IMG/VR virus record: IMGVR_UViG_3300032322_002561 | Span: 62,001-126,000 of that record | Strand: one strand, 5' to 3' | DNA: 64,000 nt | Part shown: one piece after another, positions 21,905 to 62,253 of the stretch | Numbering within the stretch: the first letter of the stretch is position 1 | Layout of the letters: every line of letters begins with the position of its first letter | Made by a program: the position numbers and the translations under genes | Notes under the pieces: model-generated | Databases searched by the model: none | Told to the model about the DNA's origin: nothing | What the model saw: the letters and a program-made list of their open reading frames with translations, nothing else

Positions 21905-22498
21905 TTACGTGGCTGTTTGTGTGGTACCATTTCCATTTTTAAAACCGATCACACCACCCTCGTCACGGATGCGTTTGAGCACATCTTCAAACAAGATAGG
22001 TGCGAAATCGGTTTGTTCCACACACACGCAATGATACCTGGTATCAATCACGTCGGTTTGTTTGCCATTGAAACCTGTGTGCATGACACGATTGGCATGC
22101 AGGTGTCCGTGGATGTTGACACCAAAACGTCCCAGACTTTCTGTGTGGATGGGAATATGGCTCAGGATCATTCCGTTCATGACATGATATGCACGCAGTT
22201 CACGGAAGTGCTCGCGATATTCTTCATCACGGAAGATGTCGTGGTTACCACGGATCAAGACCTTGTCACCGTTGAGCCTGCGCATGATGCCCAGAGCTTT
22301 CCTGTTGATCACAACATCGCCCAAGTGATAGACCTTGTCTGTGGGTCCGACACGCTCGTTCCAGGCTTTGACCATGAACTCATCCATTTCGTCGGGATCG
22401 TCCCAAGGTCTCAGCTTGGTCACACCATCGTTACGGGTAAAGCGACATACACCTGCGTGACCAAAGTGCGTGTCGCTGATTAAAAATACTGCTGGCAT
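21905..22498 (-). CDS. Calcineurin-like metallophosphoesterase
   Basis: SDTHFGH, HLGD, GNHD, LSHIP, HGHLH. Confidence 0.88.
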   Translation of the reverse strand: MPAVFLISDTHFGHAGVCRFTRNDGVTKLRPWDDPDEMDEFMVKAWNERVGPTDKVYHLGDVVINRKALGIMRRLNGDKVLIRGNHDIFRDEEYREHFRELRAYHVMNGMILSHIPIHTESLGRFGVNIHGHLHANRVMHTGFNGKQTDVIDTRYHCVCVEQTDFAPILFEDVLKRIRDEGGVIGFKNGNGTTQTAT

Positions 22499-26089: not shown

Positions 26090-26107
26090 ATAGCATGGTG
26101 AAGATGT

Positions 26108-26266
26108 TTAACTTGGGATCAATCTTGGCAAATAAGGCACTGATCTAGGCCCGTGAAGTTGTTGTAAAAGTTTTCTAGCTTCTTCGGCAGTTTCAGCCCC
26201 CACTCGGGCCTTGAATTCTTGTCCACCCGGACCTGGCTCTCTGATTGTTGCTTCCCATAATTTCAT
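26108..26266 (-). CDS. Small hypothetical protein (52 aa, not in ORF track)
   Basis: GGGAG RBS; MKLWEATIRE...PRLIPS. Confidence 0.6.
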   Translation of the reverse strand: MKLWEATIREPGPGGQEFKARVGAETAEEARKLLQQLHGPRSVPYLPRLIPS

Positions 26267-26283
26267 ATGAACTCCCATAAAAA

Positions 26284-26358
26284 TGGTACACCGTAGGAGA
26301 ATCGAACTCCTCTTACCTGCGTGAAAGGCGGGTGTCCTAACCGATAGACGAACGGTGC
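26284..26358 (-). tRNA. tRNA-Glu(UUC)
   Basis: CT-TTC-AC loop; encoded CCA. Confidence 0.93.
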
Positions 26359-26366
26359 ATACAACT

Positions 26367-26458
26367 TGGCGGAGACTATTGGATTCGAACCAATGATACA
26401 GATTACTCCATATGACGGTTTAGCAAACCGTTGCCTTCAGCCACTCGGCCAAGTCTCC
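26367..26458 (-). tRNA. tRNA-Ser(GCU)
   Basis: TT-GCT-AA loop, long variable arm, G73-CCA. Confidence 0.94.
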
Positions 26459-26461
26459 ATT

Positions 26462-26666
26462 TATTGTTGAGACCACTGTTGTATGTTTAAGAGACTTCAA
26501 ACGAACCCGTAAAGGTTTGCGCCGTTTTTATACGTCTCTCCCAACCTCATCGTTCACGCAGTATCAGCAGACTGCTATTTCCCAGATCTTGGGCTGACTT
26601 GGCCGGGATGGTTATCTTCCCCAACAGTTGGGATTGCTTACTCTTTCGCTCACAATCTCAACAATA
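26462..26666 (-). ncRNA. Unassigned structured RNA, about 205 nt
   Basis: Perfect 11-bp terminal stem, several internal helices and a possible pseudoknot; abuts tRNA-Ser. Confidence 0.6.
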
Positions 26667-26685
26667 CGCACTCTGTGGAGTGCGT

Positions 26686-26785
26686 TTGCTATCGCTCGAA
26701 TTTTTCGCTCCACAAAAGGAGTTCCATCCTCGAGGCCGCCCGTTTGTGTTAGTTATAGTGTAACACAGGCCCTCGTTGCCTGCAA
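26686..26785 (-). ncRNA. Second unassigned structured RNA candidate
   Basis: GC-rich intergenic stretch with nested stems TGTGTTA/TAACACA, CGAGG/CCTCG, CTCC/GGAG. Confidence 0.4.
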
Positions 26786-26797
26786 CCACTGTGTCAG

Positions 26798-26974
26798 TTA
26801 TTTGTCTTCTTCTGCTAACCGACGAAATTGTTCCTGCGCCCGAATCATTGCGGCCGCACGATCGATCTTGTTCTGAAACAGACGTTGTTTCTGCTCTTCG
26901 GTCAAAAAGGCCGAAATATGGTCATAAGCCTGTTTCACAATTTGATCGTTTAATTTTGTGTAATCAATTGACAT
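26798..26974 (-). CDS. Small hypothetical protein (58 aa, not in ORF track)
   Basis: GAGG RBS; MSIDYTKLND...AEEDK. Confidence 0.55.
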   Translation of the reverse strand: MSIDYTKLNDQIVKQAYDHISAFLTEEQKQRLFQNKIDRAAAMIRAQEQFRRLAEEDK

Positions 26975-28327: not shown

Positions 28328-28402
28328 GCTTGAGATTTCCTTTTAAAAGAATGCTGGGTGATCACCCAACAAGTTATTTAGTGGTTTTCACTGATGGCCA
28401 AC

Positions 28403-28430
28403 AAAAAAGCGACATTTCTGCCGCTTTTTT
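28403..28430. terminator. Intrinsic terminator after the tmRNA
   Basis: AAAAAAGCGACA-TTTC-TGCCGCTTTTTT. Confidence 0.75.
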
Positions 28431-28790
28431 GACTATTTTGGGTAACAAGGCATAGTTGCCCCGGAGATCATGCCGCTAAGGCAAAGACCTCGTCGTTGGC
28501 TGCGTTTGCAGTTATCGTTGTGCTTCTACAACCGGGTGTCCCCAGTCCTAACGGGTTTCGCATTCCCGTGTAGATCCTGTCCATACTTGTTGCCACGTCG
28601 AAACTGTGTCATCCCCACCAAAAAGACCTAGCAATTCTGGATCAATGTGCCAGCTCCAGCTCATGCTGTAATTCCACAAATTCAAGGGTGGAAAACTATC
28701 GGTCCATTGCTCCATAAAAGTCCTTTTGGTGGAGATGCCGGGTTCTGCCCCCGGGTCCGCAACACCTTTCTGTCAAGGCATTAAACTACA
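28431..28790 (-). ncRNA. ssrA: Circularly permuted (two-piece) tmRNA
   Basis: Acceptor piece ending CATCTCC-A-CCA (3' end at 28727) precedes the GGGGATG 5' end (28616); G3:U70 pair; tag ANAANDEVFALAA-stop at 28509..28468; outer ends approximate. Confidence 0.92.
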
Positions 28791-28798
28791 ATTCTTTT

Positions 28799-28828
28799 AT
28801 TGTACTACAAAAAATATTTATTGGTCAA
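28799..28828 (-). promoter_or_regulatory. Promoter for the tmRNA
   Basis: TTGACC-N18-TACAAT with TAAATA in the spacer. Confidence 0.65.
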
Positions 28829-61972: not shown

Positions 61973-62253
61973 TATAGTACTACCAATTCGCCCAGATGAT
62001 TCACTGTGGCATCTCCGTATTCTACACGATAATTTTCAACCTGTAGACTGGCCTGGCGATCCAACAGTTCATATCGTATTGTGTACTTACCGGGCCAGGC
62101 TTCAATTTGAAAGCTCTCTTGCAGATAGACATTTTGCCAGGTCCAGGTGCGCTCGGTAAACAATTCGTCATCAACGAATGCACGGTACTGTGGCGGTGTC
62201 ACAGTCCAGGCACAGTGTACATCGCAAACTATCTTGACGAACTTTTTTGTCAT
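61972..62253 (-). CDS. Hypothetical protein
   Basis: TAAATA-N5-ATG start. Confidence 0.65.
   Translation of the reverse strand: MTKKFVKIVCDVHCAWTVTPPQYRAFVDDELFTERTWTWQNVYLQESFQIEAWPGKYTIRYELLDRQASLQVENYRVEYGDATVNHLGELVVL

Follow-up and report, generated by a model that had tools for sequence, protein, structure and literature searches.

The locus studied here raises the question of whether a 205-nt segment lying just upstream of a phage tRNA gene is a fortuitous set of complementary stretches or a genuine structured RNA, and, in the latter case, whether it belongs to any described class. The segment was analyzed in a window of 64,000 nt (positions 62,001 to 126,000 of the IMG/VR virus record IMGVR_UViG_3300032322_002561), which forms part of a 236-kb record that is estimated to be 68% complete and is referred to below as G000. 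ARAGORN and Rfam place 11 tRNAs and a two-piece tmRNA between 20 and 29.5 kb of the window, all on the minus strand. The first-pass annotation, which was made from the sequence alone and gave no strand, had described a 205-nt RNA at 26462-26666 with a perfect terminal helix, internal helices, short hairpins and a pseudoknot, and had proposed a new class of phage non-coding RNA. Each of the features listed there is indeed present in the sequence, so the observation is confirmed, although the RNA has to be read on the minus strand and one of the proposed helices is reassigned below. The interpretation as a new phage RNA class is supported at the level of an RNA family.

On the minus strand the element runs from 26666 to 26462 (RNA position i corresponds to window coordinate 26667-i) and ends 3 nt before tRNA-Ser(gct), which occupies 26458-26367 on the same strand. 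The 11-bp inverted repeat TATTGTTGAGA/TCTCAACAATA is located at 26462-26472 and 26656-26666, and no ORF of 60 aa or more spans the region. The minus strand folds at -64.4 kcal/mol with a z-score of -3.5 against dinucleotide shuffles, whereas the plus strand gives a z-score of only -1.8. The terminal helix alone is not exceptional, since the window holds 26 inverted repeats of at least 11 bp within 260 nt, several of them perfect with spacers over 100 nt. The single sequence thus could not settle the matter, and it is the comparative data that lift the element above chance.

A match to a catalogued family had been named in advance as an outcome that would remove the claim of novelty. No such match was found: Rfam 15 (4227 models, including RNase P types, 6S, SRP, tmRNA, Y RNA/YrlA, group I and II introns, self-cleaving ribozymes, GOLLD, ROOL and riboswitches) gave nothing on the element, either at gathering thresholds on the whole window or with permissive filters at E up to 10 on 26300-26900. 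A gathering-threshold scan of nine other loci with members of the family returned only tRNAs and tmRNAs. Literature searches found no description of the family, although the tables of the 2023 survey of IMG/VR structured RNAs (PMC10690425) were not examined, so that we cannot say whether the family is among its 8,495 unnamed candidates.

Collection of homologs and the consensus fold

Searches by blastn with the element and its surroundings against 50,697 cultured phage records matched only the tRNAs and revealed no cultured relative. We next retrieved 39 IMG/VR loci (loci retrieved in this work are numbered with the prefix L) through the neighboring Gcw_chp gene, and although some of them are 85-93% identical in that protein, none contains the element by blastn, nhmmer or the covariance model. 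A scan with the 16-mer of the 3' end gave 46 loci, nearly all of them chance hits. A pattern made of the two terminal arms recovered one true homolog, L041, located 7 nt upstream of tRNA-Met in a cluster of 27 tRNAs. The conserved block shared by the window and L041 then identified nine more viral loci, a relaxed pattern added L100, and one scan of metagenome contigs found 27 loci, all of which were confirmed by nhmmer. A scan of genome contigs gave a single chance hit in an alphaproteobacterial MAG (L207) that is not a member, so no prophage or host copy is known. After removal of duplicates, the family comprises 28 rows (27 distinct sequences) of 165-221 nt from IMG/VR and metagenome contigs.

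A covariance model (R1) built on the alignment was used to realign the members, which score 107-203 bits; the window copy scores 189.9 bits and is the only copy in the 236-kb record. R1 was run on the retrieved loci and not on whole metagenome and virome collections. On 844 kb of unrelated phage loci R1 gave at most 18 bits, with the exception of a 41-bit hit in L182 (9832-9924, minus strand). This mini-variant of about 70-90 nt retains only a P1-like 10-bp inverted repeat, ATATTGTTTG/CAAACAATAT, enclosing the J1/3 motif UUGUGAGCGAAAGUGUAAGCAAU, and its locus has no tRNAs, which suggests that the J1/3 hairpin is a self-contained module.

The consensus fold has seven helices. P1, the terminal helix, extends to 13 bp across the 27 distinct homologs and pairs 26654-26666 (RNA 1-13) with 26462-26474 (RNA 193-205); 99.1% of its cells pair and 10 of 13 pairs have changes on both sides, while the two innermost pairs are G-U in the window copy and C-G or A-U in other members. 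P2 is a long-range helix stacked on P1, in which the loop of the P3 hairpin at 26628-26623 (ACUGUU, RNA 39-44) pairs with 26475-26480 (AACAGU, RNA 187-192), the latter directly adjoining the 3' strand of P1. P2 is 99.4% paired and 3 of 6 pairs have changes on both sides. The P3 hairpin occupies 26619-26632 and pairs CCC at 26632-26630 with GGG at 26621-26619 (RNA 35-37 with 46-48); it is 100% paired, and its third pair is U-A in 16 and C-G in 11 sequences. Since the 5' strand of P2 is the loop of P3, the two helices form an H-type pseudoknot. P4 pairs 26603-26608 (UCCCGG, RNA 59-64) with 26539-26544 (UUGGGA, RNA 123-128), and 5 of its 6 pairs have changes on both sides. The P5 hairpin at 26581-26593 (RNA 74-86; 74-77 with 83-86, CCCA/UGGG) is present in all members, but its register is ambiguous in the alignment and its two core pairs are 82.7% paired. 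The P6 hairpin at 26558-26575 (RNA 92-109; 92-96 with 105-109) has changes on both sides in all 5 pairs and a conserved 8-nt loop containing UGCUGA. P7 at 26491-26538 pairs GAGAC at 26538-26534 with GUCUC at 26495-26491 (RNA 129-133 with 172-176), with changes on both sides in 3 of 4 pairs, and encloses a variable arm (26533-26496) that ranges among members from a 6-nt loop, as in the 165-nt members, to about 60 nt.

Covariation was another of the tests named beforehand, and it proved to be strong. Overall, 96.4% of cells pair and 29 of 39 pairs show compensatory changes; the covariation score is 0.515, as compared with 0.208 for column shuffles (0 of 500 reach the observed value) and at most 0.115 for partners slid by 1-3 columns. 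Together with the covariance-model scores, these data refute the possibility that the element is a chance set of complementary segments. Among the pairings listed in the first-pass annotation, GAGAC/GTCTC is the base of P7 and covaries, and ACTGTTG/CAACAGT is P2, with 6 of its 7 bp conserved and double changes in L094, L090 and L211, which carry several compensated positions. In contrast, TCCCAAC/GTTGGGA is not the conserved pairing: GUUGGGA pairs instead with UCCCGG in P4, and UCCCAAC belongs to the P3/P2 pseudoknot. The pseudoknot is therefore real, but its topology is P2 crossing a 3-bp P3 and not the one originally drawn. We also rejected a GUG/CAGU pairing next to P1 suggested by RNAalifold, since it involves only invariant positions and excludes P2, which does covary.

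About 45 unpaired positions are invariant or nearly so. They include the block J1/3 at 26633-26653 (RNA 14-34), composed of GUGAGCGAAAG, three variable nt and AAGCAAU, which is invariant in 27 of 28 rows and was the search pattern that recovered the family; it probably forms a small hairpin capped by a GAAA tetraloop, although this internal pairing is inferred and, in the absence of variation, was not tested. Further conserved positions are AAGA..ACCA before P4, UGCUGA in the P6 loop, and the block CUUAAACA before the 3' strand of P2, part of which is J7/2 at 26481-26490 (RNA 177-186), with UUAAACA invariant in all 28 rows. An all-pairs covariation scan for tertiary contacts was dominated by phylogenetic noise, and a possible contact between AAGCA in J1/3 and UGCU in the P6 loop was not tested because both are invariant. 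The resemblance of GAUCACC...CCU to the 3' end of 16S rRNA is not conserved across members. A protein-coding reading was rejected, since member lengths differ by amounts that are not multiples of three and in 26 of 28 rows every one of the six frames has a stop codon; an SD-like AGGAG followed by AUG in some members gives no conserved ORF.

The element has a complex pseudoknotted fold with about 45 invariant unpaired nucleotides, which include an AGC next to a GAAA tetraloop and the invariant block CUUAAACA, and its size and degree of conservation are typical of ribozymes and riboswitches. The element could be a ribozyme that cleaves itself at its own borders and helps to break the tRNA precursor apart, or that acts in trans on RNA during infection, and members without a flanking tRNA still need their ends to be made somehow. 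However, no self-cleaving, group I, group II or RNase P model matches the element even at E up to 10, and members without an upstream tRNA carry an abutting hairpin rather than a conserved cleavage-site sequence. We consider this reading unlikely; catalysis was not assayed. RNase P RNA itself, defined by a P4 pseudoknot with the conserved CR-I and CR-V sequences, is not supported by any model hit, and by visual inspection we infer that the conserved blocks do not fall in the order of the RNase P core.

Position in tRNA arrays, distribution and possible transcripts

Every copy lies in a tRNA array, on the strand of the surrounding tRNAs. By ARAGORN, 21 of 28 rows have a tRNA within 26 nt downstream, 16 of them within 8 nt, and Rfam finds one more, 7 nt after the L221 copy, that ARAGORN missed. 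Eleven rows have a tRNA within 9 nt upstream, and in L215, L090 and L233 the encoded CCA of the upstream tRNA overlaps the first two bases of P1. In L211, L213, L215, L228 and L090 the element fills the space between two tRNAs exactly as a tRNA would. The contig L230 carries two diverged copies separated by a single tRNA and reads tRNA-Met, 185 nt, copy b, tRNA-Leu, copy a, tRNA-Met, whereas in the otherwise collinear L215 the slot of copy b holds a tRNA-Met. In L210 (7676-8252, plus strand) the bases immediately after the element resemble the 5' end of a tRNA-Ser (GGAGAGUUGG), but the intact tRNA-Ser starts 577 nt further on, which may reflect a duplicated tRNA fragment or an insertion.

This arrangement could also suit a cis-acting leader that controls transcription, folding or processing of the following tRNAs, either as a ligand- or protein-sensing switch or as a processing enhancer, given that nine distinct sequences are followed within 26 nt by tRNA-Met and that in the window the element is the first one after the operon leader. 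On the other hand, the downstream tRNA varies among Met, Cys, Ser, Gly and Leu, six rows have 260-610 nt before the next tRNA, many copies sit in the middle of arrays between two tRNAs, no terminator or alternative pairing with the downstream tRNA was detected, and P1 closes the element on itself. We therefore regard a cis role as doubtful.

Where no tRNA lies upstream, a hairpin abuts P1 with no spacer. In the window this 7-bp hairpin, P0, occupies 26667-26684 and may be part of the mature RNA or an insulating or processing hairpin; equivalent hairpins in L208 and L224, and in L087, L095, L222 and L230b (copy b of L230), differ in sequence but keep the pairing. Further upstream, a conserved leader (26685-26790) separates P0 from a 58-aa ORF (26798-26974, minus strand) and contains a promoter-like TTGCAG-17-TACACT at 26785-26757, which was read by eye and was not listed by a simple promoter scan. 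The leader is 81-84% identical in relatives that lack the element, where it leads straight into tRNA-Met. In L005, L006 and L012 homology runs through window 26790-26669 and then jumps to tRNA-Met at 26093-26015, so that the element, tRNA-Ser, tRNA-Glu and a 56-aa ORF form one 575-bp block (26094-26668), inserted in the window or deleted in the relatives. This illustrates the modular turnover of slots in the tRNA array.

The element was found once in each record checked, and all carriers are fragments estimated at 3-43% of large genomes. A close relative that is 93% complete (320 kb; G001) and four other whole relative records lack it, so the element is accessory and dispensable. Its terminal inverted repeats, its patchy distribution among close relatives, the differing neighbors and the duplicated copy in L230 might point to a selfish mobile element or its remnant, such as an intron derivative, a retroelement RNA or a MITE-like DNA inserting into tRNA arrays. 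We consider this very unlikely, since the terminal arms covary freely instead of keeping a transposase-binding sequence, the internal helices covary as well, no direct repeats flank the element by visual inspection, and the indel relative to close relatives covers four genes. A group I intron in a tRNA gene is not supported, as the flanking tRNAs are complete, the element is not inside a tRNA and Intron_gpI gives no hit. No transposase, reverse transcriptase or homing-endonuclease gene is consistently adjacent, although reverse-transcriptase domains were not searched for explicitly. As regards a retron msr-msd RNA, terminal repeats are present and no recurrent large ORF adjoins the element in 38 loci, but reverse-transcriptase domains were not searched for explicitly, which leaves that assignment undecided.

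The runs that hold the family are lake, freshwater and wastewater metagenomes. The tmRNAs of the carriers L210 and L094 match the betaproteobacterial two-piece tmRNA model at about 152 bits, which points to Betaproteobacteria as hosts. The window likewise encodes a two-piece (permuted) tmRNA at 28377-28819 on the minus strand, about 1.7 kb upstream of the element, with the tag ANAANDEVFALAA.

Expression, whose absence had also been proposed as grounds for refutation, was examined in assembled contigs of public runs, and a first hint of it was obtained. In one freshwater metatranscriptome, a 167-nt contig at depth 12 matches 26535-26647 with 2 differences and continues into a variable arm of the L224 type, and it therefore lies wholly inside a relative's copy. 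A seawater RNA library has a 151-nt contig that ends 6 nt beyond the 5' border. Another freshwater RNA library has a 151-nt contig with 1 difference that reaches 26687, 23 nt past the 5' end, and thus covers P0. The neighboring ORFs have zero depth in all three libraries. These contigs come from relatives, their depths are low, DNA carry-over cannot be excluded and they do not map the ends of the RNA, so the data fit a discrete small RNA but do not prove one.

Proposed biogenesis and comparison with other RNAs

The explanation that we favor, with moderate confidence, is that the element is a gene for a stable, structured non-coding RNA carried by large freshwater phages, probably of Betaproteobacteria, inside their tRNA arrays. 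In this view it is transcribed as part of the tRNA operon, has no promoter or terminator of its own and is freed by tRNA punctuation: RNase P cleavage at the 5' end of the next tRNA (in the window, tRNA-Ser) would make its 3' end, and 3' maturation of the preceding tRNA, or else a flanking hairpin or the transcript start, would make its 5' end. Release by RNase P, as suggested in the first-pass annotation, fits the family-wide flush spacing but has not been shown, and no processing site has been mapped. The stacked P1-P2 helix would protect both ends, while the three-way junction (P4, P5, P6) and P7, carrying the invariant unpaired nucleotides, should build a compact tertiary core that most likely acts in trans by binding a protein or small ligand during infection. 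The variable distance to the next tRNA, the changing tRNA partners and the self-closing P1 argue for a trans-acting product, although the conserved unpaired nucleotides would suit a ribozyme or a ligand sensor as well as a binder. Our data establish the family, its fold, its non-coding nature, its place in the tRNA slots and its accessory distribution; the processing route is an inference from these, and trans action and the identity of the partner are guesses. The function is not known.

The closest analogs are the phage T4 species 1 and species 2 RNAs (rnaC and rnaD), stable non-tRNA RNAs of 139 and 119 nt with unknown function. They are encoded on the tRNA strand inside a phage tRNA cluster, with rnaD and rnaC sitting 1 and 6 nt apart behind tRNA-Arg, and so are matured with the tRNAs. 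The element shares this location and tRNA-like spacing, but the analogy is by position only: R1 run with filters off on the T4 tRNA region scores at most 5.9 bits on rnaC, which is noise, and gives nothing on rnaD. Whether the RNA accumulates as a discrete, RNase P-processed species, as would be expected of this type, was not measured. Moreover, rnaC ends in a tRNA-like T arm, whereas no tRNA-like arm is detectable here by ARAGORN or the Rfam tRNA model, and the present fold is larger and pseudoknotted. A stable non-tRNA RNA in a phage tRNA operon thus has a precedent in T4, and what is new is the family and its covariation-supported fold.

GOLLD and ROOL RNAs are likewise phage-borne, highly structured, of unknown function, often adjacent to tRNA genes and partly from lake metagenomes (bioRxiv 10.1101/2024.12.08.627333). 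They are roughly three to four times larger, and their Rfam models give no hit here even at E up to 10; multimer formation was not tested for the present RNA. Bacterial Y-RNA-like RNAs (YrlA), some of which are phage-encoded, are modular RNAs also closed by a long terminal helix formed by the 5' and 3' ends, and are associated with Rsr/Ro60. However, the element gives no hit to their Rfam models and has no tRNA-like module, and no TROVE or RtcB gene was found in the incomplete G000 record. Liberation of RNAs lying between tRNAs by RNase P and 3' tRNA nucleases is also the logic of tRNA punctuation in mitochondrial transcripts and of tRNA-linked viral or host small RNAs, an analogy that concerns biogenesis only and says nothing about function.

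Phage tRNA arrays are usually read as lists of tRNAs. These results show that one slot in the tRNA arrays of a group of large freshwater phages holds a different cargo, a roughly 200-nt pseudoknotted RNA with conservation comparable to that of riboswitches and ribozymes. It is the first covariation-supported relative, in kind though not in sequence, of the T4 species 1 and 2 RNAs, whose function has been open for about 50 years, and a second, better-conserved example with 27 sequence variants makes the role of non-tRNA RNAs in phage tRNA operons directly approachable by biochemistry. It is possible, although we consider it rather unlikely, that the RNA represents a new functional class and not merely a new family, being either a previously unknown ribozyme or an RNA-based counter-defence or translation-takeover factor, for example a decoy or sponge for a host nuclease, tRNA-targeting toxin or signaling nucleotide, which phages would ship inside their tRNA arrays so that the tRNA-processing enzymes of the host mature it. 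In any case the alignment is a ready-made seed for a new Rfam family, and ARAGORN-negative gaps in tRNA arrays deserve attention.

Neighboring genes and a second conserved block

No partner protein emerged from clustering of the gene neighborhoods, and we claim no specific partner. The ORF at 26798-26974 belongs to a conserved group of 57-60-aa helical proteins (MSIDYTKLND...FQNKIDRA...) without a Pfam domain that immediately precede the tRNA-operon leader in many of these phages; it lies 112-273 nt upstream of the element in six lineages but also occurs in relatives without it. A calcineurin-type metallophosphoesterase of about 200 aa (window 21905-22498, minus strand; homologs in L041, L087, L089 and L092) is embedded among the tRNA genes of several carriers, but G001 has it too; a role in RNA-end healing is conceivable and was not examined. 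Domain searches in G000 did not detect a CCA-adding enzyme.

A screen for genes that are present in G000, absent from the element-free G001 and shared with other carriers yielded only a curli-type secretion cluster outside the window (G000:C1:208239-214986; locus L273:3239-9986). It encodes CsgF, CsgG with an SH3 domain, a curlin-repeat protein and a FecR-like protein next to a CHASE2 adenylate/guanylate cyclase, and is present in three other element-bearing fragments (G006, G010 and G013). This cluster is hard to link to an RNA.

In three lineages, a second conserved intergenic block of about 160 nt lies directly upstream of the element, between a tRNA and the element (L087:11139-11301, minus strand; L095:4417-4577, minus strand; L230:207-391, plus strand). 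RNAalifold finds 13 of 34 pairs compensated among only three sequences, Rfam does not hit the block, and the genome of the window lacks it. It may be another unclassified RNA in the same arrays. In L222 (400-560, plus strand), a 48-aa zinc-ribbon ORF (CxxC ... CPxC) lies upstream of the element and is followed by the same hairpin that abuts P1 in L087 and L095.
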